IMG/VR virus record: IMGVR_UViG_3300042261_002390
Location: 62,001-126,000 of that record
DNA length: 64,000 nucleotides
Reading direction: 5' to 3' (one strand)
The stretch's first letter is position 1; each line of letters starts with the position of its first letter. Both the position numbers and the translations under genes were made by a program. This document shows positions 8,694 to 62,800 of this stretch, one piece after another. A model generated the notes under the pieces. It had not been told where the DNA came from, searched no databases, and worked only from the letters and a program-made list of their open reading frames with translations.

Positions 8694-9410
8694 ATGAAAA
8701 ATGAAAAAAAATCAATTCTTTTTGAGGAACACTTAAGAAAGATTAAACACCACGTTGATTATAAAATAAACGAATCACCTAGATATCGTCCATTGGTTGG
8801 AGTTGATGAAGAATTTGATAATCTTCCATTGACTAATGAGGCTGGTGAACAAGAAGATGCAATGAAACCTGCTGGCGGTAGTGTACCGCCTGAACCAACT
8901 AATACTGATAATCCATCAGTACCAAGCACACCAACACCAGCATTTGACCAAAATGCTGCACCTGCTCCGGAAGATGAAATGCCACCTGCTGGTGACGTAC
9001 CAATGGGTGACGCACCAATGCCTTCACCAGAACCTGTTGAAAAGGTTGATGATATTCAAAATGAGATTATTAAACATAATATTGAGGCAATGAAAAATAT
9101 TCATGACCAATTAGAGAGTTTAAATCAAATGACAATATCATTGAACGATAAATTAAATGTTTTAACTAGTGATGTTGAGGAAGTTCGTGAACCAACAAAT
9201 GCTGAAAAATTAATGAATAAAACAAAAGTATCGTATCCGTATTATTTCAATTTGAATGATTTATGGAGTGATAATTGGTTTAGTCAACAGAGAGAAAAGG
9301 AAGCAGGTAAGGGAATTAGAGAATTGCCGGATGGTACTTATATTGCCGATTTTGATGATTTGCCACGTAAATCAAAAATTGATGTTCAAAATAGTTTTAA
9401 CGAAGTTTAA
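8694..9410 (+). CDS. Acidic Pro-rich hypothetical protein, possible head-associated protein
   Basis: INE/TNE motifs, Pro/acidic linker, coiled-coil-like segment. Confidence 0.55.
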   Translation: MKNEKKSILFEEHLRKIKHHVDYKINESPRYRPLVGVDEEFDNLPLTNEAGEQEDAMKPAGGSVPPEPTNTDNPSVPSTPTPAFDQNAAPAPEDEMPPAGDVPMGDAPMPSPEPVEKVDDIQNEIIKHNIEAMKNIHDQLESLNQMTISLNDKLNVLTSDVEEVREPTNAEKLMNKTKVSYPYYFNLNDLWSDNWFSQQREKEAGKGIRELPDGTYIADFDDLPRKSKIDVQNSFNEV

Positions 9411-17300: not shown

Positions 17301-19280
17301 ATGAGTGATTTGAGCGAAAATACACTTTCGGCATATTATGGTACTGAATTTCAAATGCATTTGTTATGGCAGTTGTTAGTTGAACCAGAATTTGCAGAGA
17401 AAATATTGCCTGTTTTAGCTGTGGAATACTTTGATAGTCCACATTTTAAAAGGTTATTCATTATTATTTTTGAATACTATAAGGAGTTTGGTAAAGTACC
17501 AAATCTACAAAACCAAAGTATTAAGCATGCAATTAATAAATATAAAACACCCAATAATTTAATTGAAGAAGAATCATTATTTTCTGAACTTAGGCGTATT
17601 GAATTATGGAATGACCGTGTTATTAATAAACAATTATTACACAGTGGTGATGTTATTCAGAAAGAAACATTTAATTTTATTAAACAACAGGAATATCGTA
17701 AATTAGGTGAATTTATTCTCGATAAAACAAAAACAGGTGAAATTAGAAATAAAAAGAATCTGTTTAATATCGAGGAAAGATTTCAAAAAATTTCACATAT
17801 TGGAGAAGAAGATGACGATTGTGAAGAAGTTATTGATAATATTAGTAGAGCACTTCGCAAAGAGTTTAGAAAAACTATACCTACTGGTGTTGAAGTAATT
17901 GATGCTTTAACTGGTGGTGGACTAGGTAAAGGCGAAATTGGCGTTATTTTAACTCCGTCAGGTGTTGGTAAAACTACATTATTGACAAAAATTGCAAATA
18001 CTGCGTATGAAGGGGGATATAATGTGGCTCAGGTTATTTTTGAAGACACACAAGACCAAGTAAAACGTAAACATTATTCAATATGGTCTAAAACACCGTT
18101 AAGTAAAATTGATGAAAACTTGGATTATGTAACTGAAATCTCCGAAAAAAGGGCAGCAGAATTGAGAGGTAATGGTAGATTATTGGTTAAAAGATTTAGT
18201 CAGGAAAATACTACCATTGTTGATATTAGAAATTGGATGACTTCATATCAGAAAAAATTTGGAATTAAGTTTGATTTACTAATACTTGACTATCTTGATT
18301 GTCTCGAATCACATAAACATTCACCCGATAGAAATGAAGCCGAATTAGCAATTGTTAAGGGATTTGAAGCATTGGCTTCTGATTTTGATATTCCTGCTTG
18401 GACTGCAATTCAAACAAATCGTTCGGGGTTTGATGCTGAATTTGTTGAAGCACATCAGTCCGGTGGTAGCATTAAGAGAATTCAAAAAGCACATTTCTTT
18501 ATGAGCGTCGCTAAAACACCAGACCAAAAACAAGCTGGTTTAGCTAATATCAGGATTATTAAGGCACGATTTGCACAGGATGGTCAAACGTTTAATGATT
18601 GTATATTCAATAATGATACGTTGGAAATCCGTATTGAAGATGATAGATATAAGTACAATAAACTTAGTAAAGGTCAGAAACATCATGACTCTAGTGATAT
18701 TGATAAATTAGAAAACAATATTAATAAAATGCATGTTGCAGCTAGTAATTATATGGACGATGCGTTAAGTCGAGCAAATGATGATGCTGTAAATGATGCT
18801 GTGTTTGATAATTTACGTGACACGTATATTGCTAAAAATAATACAGATGATGTATTGAAATTACCTGAAATTACGAATAATGTGGATGAAGTCGATGATG
18901 ATAACGCAGTGCTTCAGAAAATATATCAAGAAGCTGCATTAATCGACTATGACAATTCTGAATTACTTGAATTCGGTGAACCTAGATTTGATGTTGAAAG
19001 TGATGTGATTGAAAGTCCATCAACAGTATTGAACGATTCTGAATTTAATCTTATCGGATGGAATGGCGAGTCTGGAAAAACAACAGTTGAAATTATTAAT
19101 ATGCCAAGTATTGAGGTTAAGAATGAACCAAAACGACCAGTAAATTTGATTAGTGGCTCAGATATTAATGAAGTTGAAAAATTATTATCAGACCCTGATG
19201 AAGTCGAAAGACCACATATGGGCGTACATGAAATGTTACAACAAGCACGTAAAAATCAGGATGTTATGAAAAAAGATTAA
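17301..19280 (+). CDS. DnaB-type replicative helicase (T4 gp41-like) with long acidic C-terminal extension
   Basis: IPTG...D..TGGGLGKGE, PSGVGKTT, ILDYLD, WTAIQTNR, K.RF. Confidence 0.9.
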   Translation: MSDLSENTLSAYYGTEFQMHLLWQLLVEPEFAEKILPVLAVEYFDSPHFKRLFIIIFEYYKEFGKVPNLQNQSIKHAINKYKTPNNLIEEESLFSELRRIELWNDRVINKQLLHSGDVIQKETFNFIKQQEYRKLGEFILDKTKTGEIRNKKNLFNIEERFQKISHIGEEDDDCEEVIDNISRALRKEFRKTIPTGVEVIDALTGGGLGKGEIGVILTPSGVGKTTLLTKIANTAYEGGYNVAQVIFEDTQDQVKRKHYSIWSKTPLSKIDENLDYVTEISEKRAAELRGNGRLLVKRFSQENTTIVDIRNWMTSYQKKFGIKFDLLILDYLDCLESHKHSPDRNEAELAIVKGFEALASDFDIPAWTAIQTNRSGFDAEFVEAHQSGGSIKRIQKAHFFMSVAKTPDQKQAGLANIRIIKARFAQDGQTFNDCIFNNDTLEIRIEDDRYKYNKLSKGQKHHDSSDIDKLENNINKMHVAASNYMDDALSRANDDAVNDAVFDNLRDTYIAKNNTDDVLKLPEITNNVDEVDDDNAVLQKIYQEAALIDYDNSELLEFGEPRFDVESDVIESPSTVLNDSEFNLIGWNGESGKTTVEIINMPSIEVKNEPKRPVNLISGSDINEVEKLLSDPDEVERPHMGVHEMLQQARKNQDVMKKD

Positions 19281-19406
19281 AATAATTTGTAAATTTTTAT
19301 AAAAAATTGTAACTTTTTTAAAACTCATACGTAGGTATATATCACAAGCATATTGAAAAAAATAAAAAAATTTTTAAAAAATGCTTGCAGATTGAAATAA
19401 AGGTGT

Positions 19407-19414
19407 TATATTTG
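19407..19414 (+). promoter_or_regulatory. Bacteroidota-type promoter driving the RNA island
   Basis: TATATTTG with TTG at 19385-19387. Confidence 0.75.
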
Positions 19415-19459
19415 CACCGTCAATTTGAAACACGTTCATTGTAAGATTGAAAATTATAT

Positions 19460-19591
19460 GGGGAAGTATGCGAATAAAAAACAAAGAATATAGTCGTAAT
19501 ACTCCTACGGAGAACTGGTTATGTTTTCAGTAAAGGTACAGCAATTTGTGTTGAAAACAAATGTTTGTGGGTTCAACTCCCGCCTTCCCCA
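19460..19591 (+). ncRNA. tRNA-like RNA 1 (anticodon-position UGA) with ~60-nt D-loop insertion
   Basis: Acceptor GGGGAAG/CTTCCCC, D stem TGC/GCA, anticodon stem TTTGT/ACAAA with loop GTTGAAA, 5-nt variable loop, T arm GTGGG-TTCAACT-CCCGC. Confidence 0.8.
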
Positions 19592-19642
19592 CCGATGGTC
19601 ATTTTTTGTACTTTTTAGTATTTATATTAAAAAGTATATAAT

Positions 19643-20314
19643 ATGGCTAGAATTGAAAAAAAATATCATTTCATATATAAAACAACATGTATGTTAAATG
19701 ATAGGTATTATTTTGGAATGCATTCTACCGACAATATAAATGACGGATATATGGGTTCTGGAAGAAGATTAAAACGTTCATTGAAAAAATATGGTAAAGA
19801 AAATCATATCGTTGAAATTATTGAATTTTTACCTGACAGAAAATCACTTTTTCTTAGAGAAAAAGAAATTGTTAGCTTAAATGAAATTGCTAAAAAAAAT
19901 TGCATGAATTTAAAAGTTGGCGGTGATGGTGGGTTCTCTAGTGAACAGCATAGAATAAAATTTTTTGAAAAAGCAAGTGAATATTCAAAAATTAATTCAT
20001 TACTTGCTGTTAAACGTAAAGTCGAAATCCGTAAAAACAATCCAAATTGGCAGTTGGATTTAAATCGTAAGACTGGTGAAGGTGTTAGAAAATATTATCG
20101 TGATAATAATATTGTTGGTAGTTTTTATGGAAAAAAACACAGTGAACTATCTAAGGAAAAAATCAGTAAAACAAATAAAATAGTTCTTGCTGGAACAGGT
20201 AATTCACAATATGGCACACGTTGGATTACAAACGATATTGATAATAAAAAAATAATGAAAAATGATAATCTGCCAGATGGTTGGCATTATGGTAGAATTA
20301 TAAAGAAATTATAA
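19643..20314 (+). CDS. GIY-YIG (Seg-like) homing endonuclease with NUMOD3-like motif
   Basis: FIYKTT...YYFGMHST...DGYMGSG, FYGKKHSELSKEKIS. Confidence 0.85.
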   Translation: MARIEKKYHFIYKTTCMLNDRYYFGMHSTDNINDGYMGSGRRLKRSLKKYGKENHIVEIIEFLPDRKSLFLREKEIVSLNEIAKKNCMNLKVGGDGGFSSEQHRIKFFEKASEYSKINSLLAVKRKVEIRKNNPNWQLDLNRKTGEGVRKYYRDNNIVGSFYGKKHSELSKEKISKTNKIVLAGTGNSQYGTRWITNDIDNKKIMKNDNLPDGWHYGRIIKKL

Positions 20315-20335
20315 AGGAAACTGATTGTTATTTCA

Positions 20336-20408
20336 GTACAATTAACTCAGTGGGTAGAGTATTTGCCTATCAAGCGAAACGCCGTTGGTTCAAATCCAGC
20401 ATTGTAAA
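20336..20408 (+). tRNA. Atypical tRNA, anticodon ATC (Asp-like), possibly non-functional
   Basis: Cloverleaf: GTACAAT/ATTGTAA (1:72 mismatch), D ACTC/GAGT, anticodon TTTGC-CTATCAA-GCGAA, T GTTGG-TTCAAAT-CCAGC; no CCA. Confidence 0.7.
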
Positions 20409-20448
20409 ACAATAGATAACAAACGAAATATCCTTTTTAAAAATATAT

Positions 20449-20532
20449 TGTGGGATAGTGTAATTGGTAACATATTGGGCTCATAACCCAAAGACAGTAA
20501 TGCTAGTGAAGGTTCGATTCCTTCTCCCGCTA
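20449..20532 (+). tRNA. tRNA-Met(CAT), initiator-type, with 16-nt variable region
   Basis: 1:72 mismatch, anticodon stem TTGGG/CCCAA with three G-C pairs, loop CTCATAA, T arm GAAGG-TTCGATT-CCTTC. Confidence 0.85.
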
Positions 20533-20580
20533 CCGGGGTCATTTTTGAAATTACAAGTATTTATATGAAAAATATAAATC

Positions 20581-21249
20581 ATGAGTAATTACAATGACAA
20601 CAAAAAGTATCATTTCATATATAAGACAACTAATATTCTAAATGGTTCATATTATATTGGAATGCATTCCACAAATAATATCAGCGATGGGTATTTGGGA
20701 AGTGGAAAAAGAATAAAACGTTCTTTGAAGAAATATGGTAAAGATAACTTCAAATTTGAAATTTTAGAATTTACTGAAAATCGTAAAATGCTGATTGAGC
20801 GAGAAATTGCTATAGTAAACTCCGATGTCTTGAAAGATAAACTATGTTTAAACTTGAAAGAAGGTGGTTGTGGTGGATTATGTAATGAAACACATTCTAA
20901 AAATTTTCATGCTGCTGGTGGAAGAAAAGTACGTGAGTATTTTAGAGAAATTCACGCCAATAGAATGAAAAATGATGCTGAATATCATGAAAAATGGAAA
21001 ATTGCGTATAAAAATGCAATTGGCTCTCGTAAAGGAGACACTAATCCATTTTATGGTAGAAAACATGATGATGAGTGGAAAAAAACAATTAGCGATATTA
21101 TGAGAGTAAAACAATCAGGAACTAATAATTCTCAATATAATACTTGTTGGATTACTAATGAAATTGAGAATAGGAAAATAAAAAAAGATGAAATAGTTCC
21201 AGTTGGTTGGAGATTCGGTAGAAATTTGAAGATATTGAAAAAACAATGA
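20581..21249 (+). CDS. GIY-YIG (Seg-like) homing endonuclease, paralog of the 19643 ORF
   Basis: FIYKTT...YYIGMHST...DGYLGSG, NPFYGRKH, NSQY.T.WITN. Confidence 0.85.
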   Translation: MSNYNDNKKYHFIYKTTNILNGSYYIGMHSTNNISDGYLGSGKRIKRSLKKYGKDNFKFEILEFTENRKMLIEREIAIVNSDVLKDKLCLNLKEGGCGGLCNETHSKNFHAAGGRKVREYFREIHANRMKNDAEYHEKWKIAYKNAIGSRKGDTNPFYGRKHDDEWKKTISDIMRVKQSGTNNSQYNTCWITNEIENRKIKKDEIVPVGWRFGRNLKILKKQ

Positions 21250-21373
21250 ATTAGTAAGCGATTCAGTAATGGAGAGAGTAATTGCTGCAAATTGTTGAAC
21301 ATGAAAAGGCTGGTAGACCGTAAATTATTTCTCAGTAGTGCCTCACATAACCTCAATGACAATTACTAATTTA
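21247..21373 (+). ncRNA. Candidate structured RNA
   Basis: AATTAGTAA (21249-57) pairs with TTACTAATT (21363-71); inner GAGAGAGTAATT/AATTATTTCTC helix. Confidence 0.4.
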
Positions 21374-21384
21374 TTCAAACAAAT

Positions 21385-21519
21385 GGAGAAGTAGCAAAGT
21401 GATAAACAAGAAATACTATCTCAATGCTCTTGAAAAAAGAGAACTAATGGTGTTTTCAGTAAAGGTAATGCAATTGTGTTGAAAACAATCTATCGGTGGT
21501 TCAAATCCATCCTTCTCCG
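21385..21519 (+). ncRNA. tRNA-like RNA 2 (anticodon-position UGA) with ~60-nt D-loop insertion
   Basis: Acceptor GGAGAAG/CTTCTCC, D stem GCA/TGC, anticodon ATTGT-GTTGAAA-ACAAT, T arm GGTGG-TTCAAAT-CCATC; same architecture as 19460-19591. Confidence 0.8.
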
Positions 21520-21523
21520 CATT

Positions 21524-21880
21524 ATGCTCAGTCAAGCCTCTTATTCGAAAGAATAATGTAACTGGGCGAAAGACCTGATTCCCGCTAGTCCCTGAAGAAA
21601 TTCAAACTGGTGGGTACGGTTTAAAAATATTAGGGAAAACGTAAAGTGTTTACAGTAACATCGGTTCGACTCCGATATTGTTCGCCAAAAAATGAGCGAT
21701 TAGCCAAGTGGTTAAGGCACAAGTCCGTTAAACTTGCAAAAGAAAAGAATACTTTAAAATTGTTCCCAAAACTTATTGATTTTTGGCTGTTGGTGTCAGT
21801 GTTTTTTTAAAAAATGGGGCGCACCACCTAACATTTGATGGTTAAGAATGGTTTTTCGTCGCTAACGAGTGACTTTTTTT
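21524..21880 (+). ncRNA. Structured RNA containing a circularly permuted tRNA-like module (21660-21736); Y RNA (YrlA)-like candidate
   Basis: T arm, then acceptor 3' strand + GCCA, 6-nt linker, acceptor 5' strand, D arm, GTT anticodon hairpin; extra hairpins; ends at a terminator. Confidence 0.6.
21858..21880 (+). terminator. Intrinsic terminator
   Basis: GTCGCT-aacg-AGTGAC plus T7. Confidence 0.7.
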
Positions 21881-21895
21881 CAAAAAAGATGAATT

Positions 21896-22087
21896 TTAAC
21901 TATGAAAAAGGAGTAGATAGTGAAGCCGGGAGAGCGTTAACTCAAGGGTGCACACTAAGGATAAGCAGCAATGCTCAACTCTCTAATGGTGTGTGAAGCA
22001 CATATATTGTCGCCCGAAAGGATAAAAGAATGGCGTATGTGGTTAGCAAGATTCCTGATAAAAGCTATTGAGTAGTTAATTTTTTTT
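21896..22087 (+). ncRNA. Candidate ~185-nt structured RNA
   Basis: Ends pair (TTAACTA/TAGTTAA); internal CACATA/TATGTG; GCAA- and GAAA-capped hairpins; T8 after. Confidence 0.45.
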
Positions 22088-22269
22088 ACTGAAGAACTTG
22101 TTGTGTATGCAGTAAATTGAAATTTGTCGCCCATGATGGTGGCGACACAAACTTACAAGATACAACAGAACTTCTTCTCAATATTAGAGAAGCAGTGTTT
22201 TTCTGAAAAAACAAGTGGGCGGGGAACTCGACGTGGAAACGTGTCGAAGTACTTCGTCCATTTTTTTTT
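22088..22269 (+). ncRNA. Candidate structured RNA(s) or leader upstream of the vWA gene
   Basis: TTGTTGTGT/ATACAACAG, GTCGCC/GGCGAC, CTTCTC/GAGAAG; then a long hairpin TGGGCGGGG...CTTCGTCCA plus T9. Confidence 0.5.
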
Positions 22270-22349
22270 GTAGTTATTGTAACATTTTTGAATTCAATTC
22301 GTATAATTGATTCTGAATAAAATAAATTGAATTAAATTAATATTGTAGT

Positions 22350-23975
22350 ATGGAAAAATTGGTATTGACACAAAACATGGTTACATCAGTCAAGAAAGCA
22401 TTGATTGATGGATTAACTATTGCTTCTGGTGCTAAGAGCGTTGCTACTTATTACCATAGCAAAGATGAACAGATGAAGGCAATACAAGCACAAATTAAAG
22501 GCATGTATGGTCTTTCGAAAGAACTCCCCTTGATTGTTGCAACACAAAAAGGAGCAACAGGACGATTTGTATCTGAAGTATTATTAAATGAATTTAAAAA
22601 TACTTTAAAGGGTGGCGCATGTAATATTGTCAATCCGATTGATTGGTATGACAATGGTTTGGGTGATAAGGTATTGTTAAATGCTTTGAGAAATTTATCT
22701 GAGAATGGTTTACCTTATGTTCTCCGTTTATATGTTGATTTGAAAAACGCCAAAGTTAATAATGAAAGGTCGAGGAAAATCTTTCTTGGTTTCATTTGGG
22801 GTCAGCCAAATCTTGAATTTTATTCGATGAAATATCGTAATAAAATTGCCGATGTATTGAAGCATATTTATGGTCAAAAGAAAACATCAATATTGCTCTC
22901 AATTGCTCAAAAAGCCGTTAATGGTGGCGAATTTATTGCTACAGATAAGGAAATGAAGATTGCCAATGATTTGTTGCTTAAATATTATGATGGTAATGCG
23001 ATTAAAGCATTTAAATTGTTATTGTTCTTATTTAAAAAGGATAAGGGTGTTAACTATGATGCTGCTGAATTTTCATTGTTGAGCGAATACCAGAAAGCTA
23101 AGGTAAATATTAGTTTAGCAAAGCTTGTACCTGAAGAAGTATTGATTGGTTTGATTTCGAATAAAAATCATCCTCAATATAGTACAATGTGGTCAACTGA
23201 TGCACAAAAGGCTGCAACGAAGGCAATGATTCGTAAAAATGTTGAAGTTACGTCGGTAAATCAACAAGTACGTCAAACTAAATCAACAGCTAAGTTAGGT
23301 GTTGAAAAAGAGGTTGAACTTGAAAAAGCTACCGATTTCTTGGCACTTTACAAAACTGCATATGAAAATGGTTGGACTGATGAATTGAAAATTGCAATTG
23401 GTAAACTCGCAGTTAAGAAGAAAATTCAAGGATTCTTATATCAGAACATCGGTATTATCGTTGACGATAGTGCTTCTATGACTGGTAACAAGAATGAGTC
23501 TAAGAATACACCGAGAGCAATTGCCGAATTTACTGGTTTAGTACTTCAAAATTCTGCAAGGAATTCTGTTGTTGCACGTACAAGTGAATTTAGTACAGAT
23601 TTAGCATCAGCATTTATCCAATTATTGAAAGATGAAAATGATAGTCAATATGATGCTATTTTCATCATTACCGATGGTTATGAAAATGCTTACGATGGAT
23701 TGACGAATGAAGTTATCTCAATCTGGCAAGCTGAAACTGGTAGAAGTCTACCAATATTCCAGATTTCGCCTATTACTAGTGCCGAAATGGGTGCTAATGT
23801 GAGAAAGATTGGTGATAGTGTTGTTCCTATGTCGGTGAATAATCCATCTGCAATTCAGCCACAAATCAATGCGAGATTGCTTGAAATTGACGCTAAACTT
23901 TGGTTGGAAAATGAAGTACGTCAATTGGAATCAATTTCGATTACAAGAAAAGCAAAAATTAGTGTAAACGTTTAA
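22350..23975 (+). CDS. vWA-domain protein with long helical N-terminus, putative Ro60/TROVE-like RNA-binding protein
   Basis: C-terminal MIDAS: IIVDDSASM, STD, FIITDGYEN; 541 aa, Ro60-like size and layout. The TROVE assignment is inferred. Confidence 0.65.
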   Translation: MEKLVLTQNMVTSVKKALIDGLTIASGAKSVATYYHSKDEQMKAIQAQIKGMYGLSKELPLIVATQKGATGRFVSEVLLNEFKNTLKGGACNIVNPIDWYDNGLGDKVLLNALRNLSENGLPYVLRLYVDLKNAKVNNERSRKIFLGFIWGQPNLEFYSMKYRNKIADVLKHIYGQKKTSILLSIAQKAVNGGEFIATDKEMKIANDLLLKYYDGNAIKAFKLLLFLFKKDKGVNYDAAEFSLLSEYQKAKVNISLAKLVPEEVLIGLISNKNHPQYSTMWSTDAQKAATKAMIRKNVEVTSVNQQVRQTKSTAKLGVEKEVELEKATDFLALYKTAYENGWTDELKIAIGKLAVKKKIQGFLYQNIGIIVDDSASMTGNKNESKNTPRAIAEFTGLVLQNSARNSVVARTSEFSTDLASAFIQLLKDENDSQYDAIFIITDGYENAYDGLTNEVISIWQAETGRSLPIFQISPITSAEMGANVRKIGDSVVPMSVNNPSAIQPQINARLLEIDAKLWLENEVRQLESISITRKAKISVNV

Positions 23976-23986
23976 AATTTGAACAT

Positions 23987-25084
23987 ATGAATACTAGAGA
24001 TTTTTCAGAATTATTAAAAGGTTGTCGTCCTGTTAAGGATAGTGATGGCAACATCGTAGTTCAGTCAATAATGAACATGCAGATTGTATGTTTAACTACT
24101 GATAATGAGTTTTCGTTGGATAGTCGTTTCGGTAATCCTTTAACTGCTTTGAAAGCAGGTAACTCTTCATATGGTCAAATTAATTTTACTAATAAAGAGA
24201 ATAAGGAAATTATCGTTCCTACTCAAATGGCTGTTATGACCAAACAAACTGCCCAAAACCACGGTATGACTAAAGCAGGTTATATTCCCGCTAAAGGAAA
24301 TATTACATTTAGGGATGCTGGTTGTGTTCAAGGTTCTCAAGGCGGTCATTTCAGTGACACTCAGGAGTTCCGTATGTTGCCAATATCAATGCGTGAAATG
24401 GTACTTGATACTATTGGTACTCCGGAATCATATCAAAGAATTTATCCTGCAATTAATAAATTGGGTGTTGACACACAATCAAATTCAGGTAGTTATTTGA
24501 ATGTTTATTTCGATAAATACGATAAGAAACTTGAACAGTTCATCGCACATTTTGAACGTCCAAAAAACCTTATTGGTATTGTTGTGTTGGTTGATGACGA
24601 AATTGTTGGTATCGATAAGTTTCCATCATTCACATATGCAGAACAGGTTTGGGATATGATGATTCGTGACTGTTATGGGTCACTTGCAATTATTTCTGAA
24701 TTGAAATCTAAGAAATCACGTGCAGTATTTGCTGAATCATATAATGAAGTGAAGAAACATCGTGAAGATGTTGTAACTATGCTTGAAAAAGCGTTGTTAA
24801 AGACAAAACAGAAAATGACTGCAAGTGTTCAGGAAAAGATTCAAGAATTGCTTGATTTAACTTTCGATGCAACTCCTGATACTGTAGGTAACCCAACAGC
24901 AGGTAGTCATGCACCAAAATCATATGTCCTTAAAACTGAAGGATATGTTGGTCAGGTATTAACTGAAAACGAATACAACCATATGGTTAGTATCGTTAAA
25001 AGGGAAAGATTTGACCCAACTGCATTTCGTCAGGTAAACGAGTTAAGAAATAAAGCTCGTAAACAAGACAGATTCACATTATAA
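23987..25084 (+). CDS. ARPP-family-like (DUF6569-type) protein
   Basis: KQ.AQNH, AGCVQGSQGG, IGIVVLVDDEIVGID, RDCYG recall ARPP domains; 11 nt after the vWA gene. Confidence 0.55.
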   Translation: MNTRDFSELLKGCRPVKDSDGNIVVQSIMNMQIVCLTTDNEFSLDSRFGNPLTALKAGNSSYGQINFTNKENKEIIVPTQMAVMTKQTAQNHGMTKAGYIPAKGNITFRDAGCVQGSQGGHFSDTQEFRMLPISMREMVLDTIGTPESYQRIYPAINKLGVDTQSNSGSYLNVYFDKYDKKLEQFIAHFERPKNLIGIVVLVDDEIVGIDKFPSFTYAEQVWDMMIRDCYGSLAIISELKSKKSRAVFAESYNEVKKHREDVVTMLEKALLKTKQKMTASVQEKIQELLDLTFDATPDTVGNPTAGSHAPKSYVLKTEGYVGQVLTENEYNHMVSIVKRERFDPTAFRQVNELRNKARKQDRFTL

Positions 25085-25105
25085 TAATAGCGTGAATAAA
25101 AAAAC

Positions 25106-25138
25106 AACCCTGTAGGAAATTTTCTTACAGGGTTTTTT
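25106..25138 (+). terminator. Intrinsic terminator ending the vWA-ARPP operon
   Basis: AACCCTGTAGGAA/TTCTTACAGGGTT plus T run. Confidence 0.8.
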
Positions 25139-25273
25139 GTTTTATGGTGTTTTTAATTTGATTTTGTGGTATTTATTATAAATAATTCCGAACAAAAAAG
25201 TTCGGAATTGGTAACTTAATGGACGGTCATTGAGTTACGAAAAATAACCATAAAAAAATCTAAATTAATTAAA

Positions 25274-26398
25274 ATGCCATTTTTTGCAAGACCTAACCTA
25301 GATAATGAACAATTTAAGCAAATTCAGGGTACTACATTAACATTATCGGGTCAAACCCAAATAGCTACAGTTAGTGGATTTACATTAACTGATGGTACTG
25401 GTAATAATATACCTGTTATTGCTACTGGTGGTACTAATTATGATGTTTTAACCTATCTTAATGGTAAAATTTTATTAGAACCTGTTAGTGGTATTACTGG
25501 TAATGCATATAGCGGTAATTCACCAACGACATGTACTGTCGGTGGTTTAATTTCTGGAACTAGTATTAACGGATGTAGTATATCGTGTATTATTCAAGAT
25601 ATGGTAGCACCTCCGCTAAACCCGACAATAACATCACCGTCGATTGGTTTTACAATATCTCCTTCAAATATTTTATATGAAGTTGGCTCAACAATTAGCG
25701 TAACTGGATGCACTGTTTTTGATAGAGGCTGTATTACACCAGCATATTGTGGAACATGTAGTAAAAGAAGTGGTTCTGCAGTATGTTATGAATATAATGT
25801 GTGGGGAGTTCCCACATGTACTGTTAGCTCATTACCAAATAATTCAACATCTTTTACTCCATATCAAGCTGCACCGGGAAGCGTAAATACTTTAACTAGT
25901 AGAACATGGTATTCTTCTGGTTGTACTCCCGCATATAATAGTCAAGGTAGTGAATATAGTGCAGCATTATCATCAGGTTGTACACCAACATCAACAATAA
26001 CGATAACTGGTATATATCCATATTACTATGGTAAAGTTGCTAGTGGAAATGTTGCTGCCGGGTTAAACAGACCATCTGCAACTGCTGCATTGATTACTGG
26101 TGGTACTAAGGTTGTATGCAGTAGTAATAATACAATTTGCCTTAATTTTAATAGTACTTCTGATGATTACATTTGGTTTGCAACACCCGCAGCCAGCATT
26201 ACTAAAACATGTTGGTACGTTGATTCTGCAAACAATGGAATAATTAGTGGTGGCACTACAGTTGGTGGTAATTTATTTCCAGCTCCCGTTACTGTTAACG
26301 GTGTTGCAAATGTGTGTTGGAGTGGGCAATCATATAAGCTATACATTAGTAATTATCAAACCACATCAAATAAAATAATTGAACTAAGAAATAATTAA
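25274..26398 (+). CDS. Virion fibre/structural protein, Cys-rich C-terminal domain
   Basis: T/S/G-rich; RPNL..QF.Q N-terminus shared with 39242; C-terminal domain homologous to 26406. Confidence 0.6.
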   Translation: MPFFARPNLDNEQFKQIQGTTLTLSGQTQIATVSGFTLTDGTGNNIPVIATGGTNYDVLTYLNGKILLEPVSGITGNAYSGNSPTTCTVGGLISGTSINGCSISCIIQDMVAPPLNPTITSPSIGFTISPSNILYEVGSTISVTGCTVFDRGCITPAYCGTCSKRSGSAVCYEYNVWGVPTCTVSSLPNNSTSFTPYQAAPGSVNTLTSRTWYSSGCTPAYNSQGSEYSAALSSGCTPTSTITITGIYPYYYGKVASGNVAAGLNRPSATAALITGGTKVVCSSNNTICLNFNSTSDDYIWFATPAASITKTCWYVDSANNGIISGGTTVGGNLFPAPVTVNGVANVCWSGQSYKLYISNYQTTSNKIIELRNN

Positions 26399-59865: not shown

Positions 59866-62800
59866 ATGGAAATAAATAAATTAAGTGTTTTAAGTGAAAT
59901 CAAAGGATTTCTTGAAGGATATAATGATGAATTAAAATATTTGGTAAATGTCGAGACAGATTCTAAATCTGCAGTAGCTGAATGTGTAATTCATCCACCC
60001 GGAGAAAAACCTAAAATTATAAGAGTGGTTTATGAACCATTCATGTATATGAAAGATTTGTCGAAGCATAATGTTGAACTATATGCCGGACATTCTGAAT
60101 CGTATATTAAGAGTATGCAAATCAAGCACGGTATTACAATCACCAAGTTAAAAACAGGTAATCAAAAAAGGATGGTTAATGGCTATTGCTATAAGCTAAC
60201 AAGCTATAAATCATATACTAATATTATAAATTATATTCGTGATGGAGGTTTGAATCCATATGAAAAAGGCGTTGATGAAAATGGTAATTTTTTAAGGGAT
60301 GCTAAGGGTGAATTTGTCTATCCATATCGTGATTTATTTTATGCACCTAGAACTACTGAACAGTTTTTTATTAGCAAAAAAGCTCGTTTGTTTAAAGGTT
60401 TTGAGGAATATAAAAATGTTCACAAAGTAACATTTGACATTGAAACAACTGGTTTGAGATATCAAATGTCAAGAGTATTTGCTATTGGTGTTAGGGATAA
60501 TCGTGGGTTTGAAACAATACTTGAAGTCGAAAAATTGAATGACGATGAATCTGAAGTTAAGTTAATCCAAGATTTTTACAACCTTATAAACATATTACAA
60601 CCCGCAGTTATATCTGGTTATAATTCAGAAGAATTTGACTTTGAATTTTTATTGGGTAGAGCAAAGATATTGGGTATGGATATGGATAAATTGCCCACTA
60701 CCCTTAAAGATGGAGAACATCTAAAAAGAATTCCCAATACTTCAGTAAAATATGGAAATAGTGCAGATAAATATACTGCAACAAATATGTGGGGATATTC
60801 TGTTATCGATATTATTCATGCTTCGAAAAAAACAGCAGCAATTAATACTGAGGTTAAGGCAACTGGTTTGAAGTACATCGCAAAACATGAAAAAATTGCA
60901 AAACCAAATAGAACATACATTAAGGGTGAAGATAATTCGATAGGTAGATTCTATAGTGAAAATAAAATATTTTTGATTGATGAGAATAATGGTTATGTTC
61001 AAATACCTGATGAATTTCAACAAATAGGTAATAAGTTCTATACGCTTCAAGCTAATAAGAATAGATTGAGTGAAGCTGATTATAAAAATCTGAGAGTAAA
61101 ATACTTAGATAGTGATAAAGAGTTTGTCGCTTGGTTTAGAACTATGCCACCAACTATGAACAAATTTATTACAGGTAGGAAAATTGTTAGACAATATTTG
61201 CTTGATGACTTATGGGAAACCGAACAAGTTGATGAATTGTATAACCAGTCATCATTCATGTTGGCAAAAATTATTCCCACAACATATCATCGTGTATGTA
61301 CGATGGGTACTGCAGCAATTTGGAATTTATTGCTTACTGCATGGAGTTATGAGAATGACTTAGCGATTCCAGAATGTGATGTTCAGGATAGATTTTCTGG
61401 TGGTTTGGCTAGATGTTATAAGGTTGGATATTCAACTCGTATCATTAAGATTGACTACGCATCGTTGTATCCTATGATTCAGTTGACCGATAACGTATTT
61501 CCGATGTTTGATATCACCGGGGTTATTAAAAAAATGTTATTGTATTTGACAACTACACGTAATATCTATAAAAAATTAGCGAGTAAGACTAAACTGAATG
61601 ATGAAGAAGTTAAACTGTTGGAACAGATTGACCGTGAGGTACATGTTAAATATTTGAATAATGCATTTACACCGGAAGATATTGCGATGTTTAAGATTAA
61701 ACAATTACCAATTAAGATTTTGAACAACTCGTTGTTCGGTGCATTGGGTTCGGCAATATCATTCAATTGGTCTGATAATACTTGTGCTGCTAGGATTACG
61801 TGTACAGGTAGGTTACATTTAAGACACGCTATTGACTGGTTTAGTAAATTTGGTTGTATTGCATTACTTGCTGTAACAGATGGTATTAACTTTAGTTTTC
61901 CTGAGAAGACAACCATACGTGTTACTGATGAGGGAATAACTGAGGGAGTAAATGAGGGAGTAATCGAAGAAATGTGGCAATATGGTGGTAAGACCGGAAT
62001 CTCTGCATTGATTGAAAAATATAATAAAGAAGAAATGAAGCCACCATTTATGGCTGTTGATGATGATGGTGAATCGTTATCTTGTTTAAATCTCTCTCGT
62101 ATTAATTATGCTACATTGGCATTGGAGAAGGATAAAAAAACTGGTGAAATGAAAGAAAAAGTCAAATTAACTGGTAATACTATTAAATCTAAAACGATGC
62201 CGGAATATATTGAAGAATTTATTGATAAAGGATTGAATATGATTCTTCACGGACAGGGTAAAGAATTTGTTGAATATTATTATGACTATTGTGATAATAT
62301 TCGTTACATGCAAATTCCATTGAAAAAGATTGCTAGTAAGAGTAAAATTAAGACTACATTAGCTGCATACCGTAAACGTGGTAAGGATAAGAATGGTAGA
62401 GAAAAAGGTATGCAGGCACACATGGAATTATTGTTGGAGAAACGAGATAAATTGTGTGAAGAATTGTTTGAAAAACATAAAGATAATTTCGATTTAAAAA
62501 AATACGAAAAGAAGGGTATTACCATAGAAGATAAAATGAAATTAGTTTCAGACTATATGCCACCAGAACCACCGTTGGATAGCGTAGTGTATTATGTGAA
62601 TACTGGTTACAAAAAATCACATGGCGATTCTAGAATGATTACTGATAAATTTACTGGCAAAGAAAGATTTTGTGCAACTTTAATTGATACTGAAGATTTG
62701 ATTGAAAATCCAAATATGCTTGGTGGATATAATTATGAAAAATATTTAGATGCATTCAATAAGCGTGTTGAAACACTATTGGCAGGATTTGACGTTGAAA

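Follow-up and report, generated by a model that had tools for sequence, protein, structure and literature searches.

Which function could a set of tRNA-shaped RNAs serve directly upstream of a gene for a vWA protein? This question is raised by a locus in IMG/VR virus record IMGVR_UViG_3300042261_002390, of which a stretch of 64,000 nucleotides (nt; positions 62,001 to 126,000, called the window below) was analysed. The window is part of a ~340 kb contig, and all of its large open reading frames (ORFs) are on the + strand. It comes from a huge phage whose host probably belongs to the Bacteroidota, because its promoter-like sites have the Bacteroidota form (TTG ... TAnnTTTG) and one relative was binned as Porphyromonadaceae.

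An earlier reading of this DNA (the original prediction) had proposed a Ro60-like ring protein of 541 amino acids (aa), an ARPP-like partner of 365 aa and several unusual tRNA-like RNAs. We followed up the proteins, the RNAs and their relatives in phages and bacteria. Our results suggested that the locus is probably a divergent Ro60/Y-RNA-type ribonucleoprotein module, in which the ring protein would bind the RNAs. As far as the refuting conditions of the original prediction could be checked by computation, none of them applied. The trio of ring protein, ARPP and tRNA-shaped RNAs recurs within large tRNA gene arrays of distant bacteria, and points to an undescribed tRNA-directed ribonucleoprotein system.

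Predicted Ro60 architecture of the ring protein

The fold of the 541-aa protein was predicted with AlphaFold (AF2) from an alignment of 111 diverse representatives of its family (predicted local distance difference test, pLDDT, 93.9; predicted template-modelling score, pTM, 0.91). An earlier model built on 19 close homologues was poor (pLDDT 63.5), and only the 111-member alignment gave a usable one. In this model, an all-helical TROVE-like N-terminal part (about residues 1-356) is followed by a MIDAS vWA domain (about residues 360-530), in which strands and helices alternate. The MIDAS consists of D-D-S-A-S at residues 371-376 and of D442-G443. D372, D442 and G443 are invariant among the 111 members, and S374 and S376 are conserved in at least 90% of them, in agreement with the C-terminal MIDAS vWA domain of the original prediction.

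The model was compared with PDB by Foldseek. The best 12 matches were all Ro60, Rsr or TROVE structures, aligned over the full length (~575 columns, E = 3e-7 to 7e-4) with template-modelling (TM) scores of 0.38-0.55, about 0.5; the next PDB match had an E value of 0.05. These 12 comprise Xenopus and human Ro60, D. radiodurans Rsr and the Ro60 of Thermus phage phiLo, and two of the fold matches, 9l5y and 9kop, are structures of phage Ro60s. The viral structure library BFVD returned Ro-like and TROVE proteins, from phages as well as from giant viruses, with a Gordonia phage 'Ro-like RNA binding protein' among them. The original prediction had been made to depend on a TROVE-like N-terminal domain, and with a model of this quality and only Ro60, Rsr and TROVE structures at the top, a divergent Ro60-like protein was borne out at the level of the fold.

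The sequence of the protein gave a different picture. None of 56 family members matched Pfam TROVE (PF05731), even at E <= 1, and no Ro60 chain was found when the profile of the 111 members was searched against PDB sequences. Searches of Pfam, PHROGs, NCBIfam, PADLOC and PDB sequences, with the single sequence and with the profile, returned only weak vWA matches: residues 1-360 matched nothing, and the remainder gave a sub-threshold vWA signal. The Pfam vWA models reached E = 0.16 at best on the 541-aa protein, and vWA hidden Markov models (HMMs) matched weakly in 14, 10 and 7 of the 56 members. The family is large. It comprises 373 close sequences, mostly 70-75% identical, on contigs up to 355 kb, and forms 304 clusters at 50% identity, reaching down to ~25% identity. 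Because the top fold matches are Ro60-only, yet 0 of 56 members match PF05731, we conclude from the model that the 541-aa protein has the Ro60 architecture and lies outside the TROVE sequence family.

A CobT/CobS or MoxR-vWA chaperone pair was also considered. It was rejected since the partner protein is an ARPP and not an AAA+ protein, and since the N-terminal domain is TROVE-like. CobT was only a marginal vWA-level match to the ring-protein profile (E ~1).

ARPP-1 is the predicted partner of the ring protein

The 365-aa ORF starts 11 nt past the stop codon of the ring gene, and the pair is closed by a terminator hairpin followed by a T run, both as had been proposed. Its product passed the cut-off of Pfam ARPP-1 (PF20208; E = 3e-14, 53.4 bits versus a cut-off of 27), which confirmed the ARPP-like partner. 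Among 71 phage and bacterial ARPP members, C113, Q115, Q118, H92, R136, E190, R227 and C229 are conserved, with C113, Q115 and Q118 kept in 68-70 of the 71, and ~30 further positions of the phage ARPP are shared with the bacterial members. No solved relative was found by sequence search. Iyer, Burroughs, Anantharaman and Aravind, who defined ARPP in 2022, described an orphan domain that occurs in ADP-ribose-processing conflict neighbourhoods and in which one Cys and one Gln are invariant (PMC9503650).

In 57 of the 64 non-phage loci, ARPP adjoins the ring protein or is fused to it. ARPP-1, a predicted enzyme, is accordingly regarded as an obligate partner of the ring protein. A single ring protein-ARPP polypeptide of ~880-900 aa is present in five homologous loci (labelled L and a number here): L121, L127, L130, L142 and L085 (P0248); several of them are Myxococcota/Polyangia assemblies.

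Five upstream RNAs share a handle

The original prediction had also described ~1.1 kb without a sizeable ORF (21250-22349), filled with base-paired modules. No ORF longer than 76 aa was found there; the one of this length is encoded by the minus strand and extends across the edge of the segment, and the largest fully internal one has 59 aa. The base-paired modules were recovered as well: H3, H4, H5 and M4 show covariation, and M5 has a folding z-score of -4.3.

Five non-coding RNAs upstream of the ring gene and on its strand (H1-H5; Table 1) have one element in common, which we call the handle. It consists of a stem P1, an internal loop on the 5' side with an invariant AAC, and a stem P2, at whose opening an invariant CAG stands, mostly as part of CAGUAA. 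Both stems covary. The 5' strand of the handle is GGGAAAAC, GGAGAACU, AGGAAACU or GAAGAACU in phage and GGGAACU in bacteria. In Y RNAs, which are encoded beside the Ro60 gene, the two ends of the molecule form a stem that is interrupted by a conserved internal loop, and the P1/AAC/P2 handle has this arrangement.

Four of the five handle RNAs bear a tRNA-shaped cargo, in which the T-loop, the D-loop GG and the U8/A14 positions are as in tRNA. Four topologies were observed: the handle replaces the D-arm (H1, H3), it extends the acceptor stem (H2), the cargo is circularly permuted with a closed acceptor (H4), or the cargo is a plain hairpin (H5). Several unusual tRNA-like RNAs had been proposed, and H1-H4 are tRNA-shaped and covary.

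H1 and its paralogue H3 have a free 7-base-pair (bp) acceptor stem, a T-arm and an anticodon-like arm, and the handle in place of the D-arm is capped by a small loop. In the alignment of both RNAs (A4, 56 sequences), 94.4% of the cells were paired and 23 of the 32 pairs showed compensatory changes, while the slid controls gave 47-56%. The pairing of P2 with the upstream strand is supported by compensatory changes in L018 and L024. Two other pairings were tried for module A and rejected. For a pairing of GUUUUCA with the downstream UGAAAAC, the compensatory changes favoured the upstream A-rich strand as P2 and a separate downstream hairpin (5 bp, 7-nt loop); a D-arm-like helix GAGAUAG/CUAUCUC would share nucleotides with the acceptor stem, and it cannot form in L056 and L058. 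H3 scored 26.7 bits with Rfam tRNA, under the cut-off of 29.

In H2, the handle clamps both ends of a tRNA body (20336-20408) that was called tRNA-Asp with the anticodon AUC. Its 5' strand is AGGAAACUGAUUGUUAUUUCAG and its 3' strand AGAUAAC...UCCU. H2 passed the tRNA detectors (ARAGORN; Rfam tRNA, 53.6 bits) and was also matched over its full length, at 34 bits, by R1, a covariance model made from the H4-type phage RNA. The flanks of the tRNA body are kept with compensatory changes in 20 relatives.

H4, which scores 135.6 bits with R1, has the order handle 5' strand (GGGAAAAC..AAAGUGUUU-ACAGUAA), T-arm, closed 7-bp acceptor stem, D-arm, anticodon-like hairpin and handle 3' strand. Its T-loop is canonical (GGUUCGAnUCC), its D-arm carries the GG and the U8/A14 equivalents, and its hairpin has 5 bp and a 7-nt loop. 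The loop closing the acceptor stem is led by GCCA in the window and measures 4 to ~25 nt in relatives, where it often starts with NCCA. The alignment of 51 distinct sequences (A3) was 98.7% paired, with 23 of the 34 pairs changed on both sides; the value fell to 38-55% when the partners were slid. Rfam tRNA matched the 5' half of H4 only, at 28.8 bits (cut-off 29).

The permuted order of T-arm, acceptor 3' strand, NCCA, spacer and acceptor 5' strand would also suit a two-piece tmRNA-like molecule for ribosome rescue, formed by H4 with or without H1, and there is a weak Rfam tmRNA match on H1 as well as an ARAGORN 'tmRNA*' at the equivalent RNA of L099. We regard this reading as scarcely credible. 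The match on H1 has 18.8 bits versus a cut-off of 47; the G3:U70 pair of alanine identity is not conserved (G:U in the window, A:U or others in relatives); no conserved tag reading frame was found, and the acceptor is closed by a tetraloop in many relatives. A permuted tRNA gene that matures to a normal tRNA was rejected on the same three grounds of tetraloop-closed acceptors, unconserved G3:U70 and missing tag frame. ARAGORN called no tmRNA in the window. Its call in L099 (4656-5206, a permuted 'tmRNA*' with a 31-residue tag) spans the handle RNA and the start of the ring gene, and is almost certainly an artefact of the permuted T-arm/acceptor layout.

H5 has no tRNA-like part. Its handle (GAAG-AAC-UU-GUUGUGU...CAGUAA) encloses one covarying hairpin, and the RNA was found in 69 loci. 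One P2 pair is UA in 31 sequences and AU in 14, and one hairpin pair is GC in 18, CG in 17 and AU in 6.

Other structured RNAs lie between the handle RNAs. M4 (~120 nt) has a closing stem that reads UUAGUAA/UUACUAA here versus UGACCU/AGGUCA in relatives, keeps the internal motifs GAACAUGAAAAUGCUGG and UCACAUAACCAC, and is present in 15 relatives; it had no Rfam match, and its single-sequence fold was not unusually stable (z = +1.4). M5, which has no handle either, has a minimum free energy of -34.2 kcal/mol (z = -4.27, none of 200 shuffles as stable) and is almost restricted to this phage, as it was found in only 4 loci. The segment 21891-22085 (M7) is neither conserved nor unusually stable. 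The tRNA-Met (CAU) that follows H2 has the hallmarks of an initiator, namely a mismatch at 1:72 and an anticodon stem whose foot is made of three G:C pairs (GGG/CCC). Its long variable arm, of variable length (73-89 nt among relatives), is odd for a Met tRNA; a tRNA-Met (CAU) is present in nearly all relatives that were scanned.

When 19200-25400 was searched with Rfam at E <= 10, no Y_RNA or YrlA was found, GOLLD, ROOL and HEARO were also unmatched, and tRNA was the sole family that passed its cut-off. This result agrees with the statement of the original prediction that the RNA set belongs to no described family.

Anticodon-like triplets are hypervariable

The anticodon-like loops of H2, H1/H3 and H4 have 7 nt, mostly with U33 and A37/38. 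Their triplet positions are hypervariable. In the alignments of H4 and of H1/H3, whose columns average 0.64-0.74 bits, the entropy of these positions is 1.15-1.98 bits; in H2 it is 1.51-1.84 bits. Among the H2 orthologues (the window and L006-L074), 16 anticodons occur in 21 sequences: AUC, GUC, UCA, CGU, CAA, UAA, UUU, UCU, UUC, UGA, UUA, GUU, ACA, UAU, CCU and CUU. The variants UCA and UUA would read stop codons, and A34 in an Asp anticodon is unusual. The variable triplets, together with the embedding in tRNA arrays described below, fit a tRNA-centred role and do not prove it.

These loops also bear on a second explanation, in which the handle RNAs are precursors or stored forms of decoding tRNAs. 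It would apply chiefly to H2 and to the bacterial versions whose handle extends the acceptor stem of a normal tRNA; the handle would be a leader-trailer clamp that controls how RNase P and RNase Z process the RNA. The pair of ring protein and ARPP would then be a maturation or quality-control factor of the adjacent tRNA array and not a particle of the Y-RNA kind. H2 and several bacterial handle RNAs do pass tRNA detectors and have canonical loops, U33 and A37 are mostly kept, the acceptor stems have 7 bp and are often followed by NCCA, the system is embedded in tRNA arrays, and the YrlA of M. smegmatis is itself cut by RNase P and gains CCA. The other RNAs are hard to place in this scheme: H1/H3 have no D-arm, H4 has a tetraloop acceptor without CCA in many relatives, and H5 has no tRNA part. 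Moreover, one H2 body with 16 anticodons, which stand for ~12 amino acids and two stops, is hard to square with aminoacyl-tRNA synthetase identity. We therefore hold a precursor role to be unlikely, if a serious possibility, and prefer the reading as a Ro60/Y-RNA-type module.

RNAs and proteins stay together in phages and bacteria

The array lies upstream of the ring gene in ~80 related phage loci, as conserved blocks separated by lineage-specific insertions. In most relatives it is compact, ~1.1 kb, and immediately 5' of the ring gene. Since the ring proteins of these phages are 62-100% identical, such synteny is expected.

It would be expected, too, if the RNAs were an ordinary phage tRNA cluster whose tRNA genes are decaying and which homing endonucleases have entered, as happened in T4, with the vWA gene an unrelated neighbour kept by shared ancestry only. 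The tRNA genes of T4 form a cluster that also holds segB and encodes the stable RNAs called species 1 and 2. The locus of the window resembles it, since here, too, GIY-YIG homing endonuclease genes of the segB type have entered a cluster of tRNA and stable RNAs of tRNA size; the segB-like genes and the tRNA matches would accord with this explanation. We know of no Ro60-like or ARPP genes beside the T4 cluster and of no handle shared by its RNAs. Base pairing of 94-99% with dozens of compensatory changes is unexpected of decay, and a handle that is not part of a tRNA would not be common to decaying genes. A decaying cluster is very improbable also in view of the bacterial loci, where the RNA features recur with a strand bias beside proteins of 25-30% identity in other phyla.

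These loci were obtained by a scan of GTDB species representatives. In Planctomycetota, Myxococcota, Bacteroidota, Desulfobacterales and elsewhere, it found relatives whose proteins are 25-31% identical. In the non-phage loci, all 67 R1 matches were on the gene strand. Many of them lie directly 5' of the gene in the order T-arm, closed acceptor, D-arm, and some are full-length including the handle (for example L085, 41 bits). The matches that adjoin the gene lie where ARAGORN calls no tRNA. R1 matches within bacterial tRNA arrays (for example L102 991-1071 and L096 2431-2506) were discounted as 'tandem tRNA' artefacts, against which Chen et al. have warned.

Two further searches also showed a strand bias. 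The handle pattern G[AG]GAAC-N-(9-14 nt)-Y-N-CAG, searched in 457 kb, occurred 32 times on the gene strand versus once on the other, and each occurrence precedes the gene by 130-1030 nt. Of 35 handle motifs, 28 have a P1 partner 60-300 nt downstream, versus 33% of control positions; this strand covaries with the 5' strand in bacteria, and a U run often follows it. An independent detector, which looks for a T-arm followed by a closed 7-bp stem, found 46 on the gene strand versus 1 on the other. This sole closed-acceptor mimic on the opposite strand (L102, ~9094-9130) has a good D-arm right after it. It is located 3' of the cassette and may be part of a second, oppositely oriented unit. The original prediction had required such RNAs at homologous vWA-ARPP loci, and by handle pattern and R1 they are present there.

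By eye, the full order of YrlA was seen in L092, L096 and L099, in planctomycete and myxobacterial RNAs: between the two handle strands lie a V hairpin, a T-arm, a closed acceptor and a D-arm. Other bacterial handle RNAs clamp a complete tRNA (for example Lys-CUU, Thr-GGU or Ala-UGC). Rfam at gathering threshold gave no Y_RNA or YrlA match in 13 bacterial loci. One Flavo-1 RNA (Rfam RF01705, 51 bits) was found on the minus strand of L093 (4622-4712), 3' of the cassette in a Chitinophagales metagenome-assembled genome, and is probably unrelated.

The bacterial loci are also rich in tRNA genes. In 63 non-phage loci (560 kb), ARAGORN called 424 tRNA genes on the gene strand and 0 on the other. 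At least 10 tRNAs were present in 16 of the 63 loci, with 39 in 11 kb in Minicystis rosea. The tRNA array is a frequent and not an obligatory companion, since 22 of the 63 loci have none. Judged from the sequences compared, the link between RNAs and proteins exceeds phage synteny, because the RNA features recur, with strand bias, near 25-30%-identical proteins in other phyla; the handle motif and the closed-acceptor mimic are located immediately 5' of the gene pair in Planctomycetota, Myxococcota and Bacteroidota.

The position of the RNAs could instead mean that they are cis-acting leaders, attenuators or protein-binding operators in feedback control of the Ro60-like/ARPP operon. They are upstream and on the same strand, and in bacteria the last RNA ends 100-300 nt ahead of the start codon. 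However, each locus has more than one such RNA, and each RNA is closed by a terminator of its own or by P1 and a U run; inserted genes can part the phage RNAs from the protein genes, and the ring gene has a promoter-like site of its own. Leaders are accordingly an improbable explanation, and the Ro60/Y-RNA-type module remains the reading that we follow.

Layout of the locus

The coordinates of all features are collected in Table 1. The Bacteroides promoter consensus is known, and the resemblance to it makes the site ahead of the array a putative promoter. The same arrangement precedes the array in L001, and the block is kept in ~50 relatives.

Table 1. Features of the RNA array and the protein pair in the window (positions of the 64,000-nt stretch).
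Feature	Position	Strand	Basis
Promoter-like site of the RNA array (TTG ... TAtatTTG, Bacteroidota -33/-7 type)	19385..19414	+	Read from the sequence; putative promoter
H1 (module A), tRNA-like RNA	19460..19593	+	Alignment A4
segB-like GIY-YIG homing endonuclease gene within the RNA array	19643..20314	+	PHROG 314, E = 9e-36; NUMOD3 motif; DNA similarity to T4 segB
H2, handle flanking a complete tRNA body	20315..20434	+	ARAGORN, Rfam tRNA, R1
Initiator-like tRNA-Met (CAU), 86 nt, long variable arm, no handle	20449..20534	+	ARAGORN; Rfam tRNA, 59.1 bits
Second segB-like GIY-YIG homing endonuclease gene	20581..21249	+	Pfam SegE_GIY-YIG, GIY-YIG and NUMOD3; PHROG 314, E = 8e-35
M4, structured RNA, no handle	21250..21370	+	Covarying closing stem
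H3 (module A'), paralogue of H1	21385..21521	+	Alignment A4, common to H1
M5, two stable hairpins	21526..21622	+	Folding energy versus shuffles
H4, circularly permuted tRNA mimic	21633..21767	+	Alignment A3
Conserved tail with intrinsic-terminator-like hairpin (21858-21873 and T run)	21770..21880	+	Conservation; fold not unusually stable (z = -0.16)
H5 (M8), handle around a single hairpin	22091..22177	+	Covariation; 69 loci
Compound terminator ending the RNA array	22215..22270	+	GC-rich stem and nine-T run, kept in relatives
Ro60-like protein, 541 aa (predicted)	22350..23975	+	AF2 model, Foldseek, MIDAS residues
ARPP-1 protein, 365 aa	23987..25084	+	Pfam PF20208
Intrinsic terminator of the protein pair	25106..25134	+	13-bp stem, 3-nt loop, T run

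In the window, the array is split by two paralogous segB-like GIY-YIG/NUMOD3 genes. The first of them is absent from this place in most relatives, and its stop codon abuts the handle of H2. At the DNA level, the deposited phage genomes contained no close relative, and the sole matches were segB-type homing endonuclease genes. Within the terminator that ends the array, GGGGAACUCGACGUG... looks like the 5' strand of a handle but has no CAG; it may be a chance likeness or a sixth, degenerate handle.

Genes for a RecA-like protein, a 5'-3' exonuclease and a DnaB-type helicase lie 5' of the system. The helicase of the window (17301-19280) has 659 aa and no intein, whereas that of relatives such as L001 (622-3942) has 1106 aa with a LAGLIDADG/Hom_end intein. 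In such relatives (L001, for example) there is also a KilA-N gene ahead of the ring gene, and the ring gene is separated from ARPP by a gene for an HNH endonuclease. Right after ARPP, two unannotated proteins of 374 and 616 aa are encoded, which are syntenic in relatives. The region 28276-63567 holds very large ORFs of 1027, 2220, 1299, 1300 and 1233 aa; the 1027-aa protein, the one of the five that was scanned, had no Pfam match.

Discussion

The closest known counterparts are the bacterial Ro60 (Rsr) proteins with YrlA and YrlB, as in Salmonella rsr-yrlBA-rtcBA, in M. smegmatis and in D. radiodurans Rsr-Yrn1-PNPase. The helical-repeat ring and the MIDAS vWA domain are alike at fold level, and in both cases several non-coding RNAs lie just 5' of the gene and on its strand. 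The RNAs share with Y RNAs the closing 5'/3' stem and a conserved purine-rich internal loop. In YrlA, the tRNA-like module consists of T-arm, closed acceptor-like stem and D-arm, the closing stem binds Ro60, and Y RNAs precede Ro60 genes (PMC4201824); in M. smegmatis, the 7-bp acceptor of YrlA is cut by RNase P and CCA is added (PMC4201824). H4 has the T-arm, the closed acceptor-like stem and the D-arm with the nucleotides of the tertiary contacts, and bacterial relatives such as L092, L096 and L099 keep the whole order stem-V-T-acceptor-D-stem. The differences are also clear. In the H4 of the window the hairpin comes after the D-arm, unlike in YrlA, and H1, H2, H3 and H5 are arranged otherwise. 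Unlike bacterial Ro60 systems, the locus has neither a TROVE sequence match nor an Rfam Y_RNA or YrlA match, and the partner gene is ARPP instead of RtcB/RtcA or PNPase. The handle carries GGGAAC...CAG, whereas the 5' strand of canonical Y RNAs carries the Ro60-binding motif GNCGAAN0-1G (PMC4201824). Finally, unlike in Y RNAs, the cargo comes in four topologies and has an anticodon-like arm with a free triplet, and the cassette is often embedded in tRNA arrays.

TROVE proteins are known from a few jumbo phages. The phiRo60 of Thermus phage phiLo binds two upstream Y-like RNAs, Yrl1 and Yrl2 (PMC12135203). The phage Ro60s of phiLo, mycobacteriophages, CcrColossus and Bacillus phage G likewise combine a Ro60-fold protein with at least two small RNAs directly upstream. 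They differ from the system of the window in being recognisable TROVE proteins, in having RNAs with a CGAA motif and in having no reported ARPP partner; the effector proposed for phiLo is the host PNPase. The ARPP domain itself is shared with ARG/Rhodanese-phosphatase/ARPP conflict systems, in whose neighbourhoods vWA proteins occur (PMC9503650). Those neighbourhoods are ADP-ribose-processing, and the two-gene pairs listed for ARPP are with HIRAN, WYL and a deacetylase, not with a TROVE-fold protein, RNAs or tRNA arrays (PMC9503650). With 20 or more tRNA genes in one orientation and over 2 of them per kb, bacterial loci of the present system resemble the tRNA array units of bacteria, plasmids and phages; as far as the available text of the surveys shows, no Ro60-like/ARPP cassette or handle RNAs are reported inside such arrays (PMC4758250, PMC5966550). 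In the literature available, we found no work that ties ARPP, a TROVE-fold protein and tRNA arrays together.

How might such a module work? By analogy with Ro60 and Y RNAs, the ring protein would bind the handle through its closing stem and conserved internal loop. The tRNA-shaped part would then project from the particle, where it may gate the ring or else tether or lure a factor that recognises tRNA. The effector would be ARPP, attached through the MIDAS face of the vWA domain or by fusion, and its probable target would be a ribose-linked lesion or the end of an RNA that is threaded into the ring or presented at it. The likeliest role may be tRNA surveillance, protection or repair in conflict, which in the phage would be directed against host systems that cut or modify tRNAs. 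In the original prediction, the RNAs and the ring were suggested to counter anticodon nucleases of the host, perhaps, or to manage damaged RNA. A tRNA-conflict role is plausible, though this is not evidence for the present locus, because phage tRNAs neutralise tRNA-cleaving defences (PMC11464382, PMC11555353), because one known toxin ADP-ribosylates the anticodon loop of a tRNA (PMC13617354), and because ARPP is found in contexts of ADP-ribose.

Several points weigh against the module as we read it. The likeness to Ro60 is at fold level only, with a TM score of ~0.5, a root-mean-square deviation of 8-9 Å and no TROVE HMM match in 56 members, and the handle lacks the canonical GNCGAAN0-1G motif. 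H2 might be simply a working tRNA. Binding, expression and processing of the RNAs are predictions. The published contexts of ARPP, a predicted enzyme, are ADP-ribose systems and not RNA (PMC9503650). About 40% of the bacterial loci had no RNA match by the detectors used, where some flanks are short and some RNAs may have diverged. Among close phages synteny alone is weak evidence, and homing endonuclease and KilA-N genes can separate the RNAs from the protein genes.

A bolder version of the same module can be formulated as a tRNA-decoy and repair machine, which we put forward only tentatively and consider doubtful. Here the handle would anchor the tRNA-shaped RNAs as baits on the ring, the freely evolving triplets would track the tRNAs attacked by toxins, and the invariant cysteine of ARPP would remove or trap a ribose-linked lesion. 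The attackers could be anticodon nucleases, acceptor-end modifiers or tRNA ADP-ribosyltransferases of the host or of a competitor, and the tRNAs that pass through the ring could carry the lesion as an ADP-ribose, as a pyrophosphate or as damage to the 3' ribose. If true, this would reveal a new class of RNA repair or counter-defence in huge phages and bacterial tRNA arrays, and the effector that has long been sought for the tRNA-like domain in Y RNAs would be at hand.

The finding bears on several families. A Ro60-fold family of 304 clusters at 50% identity has been missed by sequence models, and ARPP, an orphan domain of ADP-ribose conflict neighbourhoods, gains an RNA context. The RNAs have a modular design, in which one predicted protein-binding stem is grafted on tRNA scaffolds at the acceptor, D-arm or variable-loop position. 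tRNA arrays and the tRNA clusters of huge phages, so far mainly explained as codon supply or as escape from tRNA-cleaving defences (PMC11464382, PMC11555353), gain a candidate accessory. For the tRNA-like domain of bacterial Y RNAs, whose interactor is unknown and whose purpose has likewise been open since 2014 (PMC4201824), the ring protein, ARPP and the handle RNAs now offer a testable three-component system.

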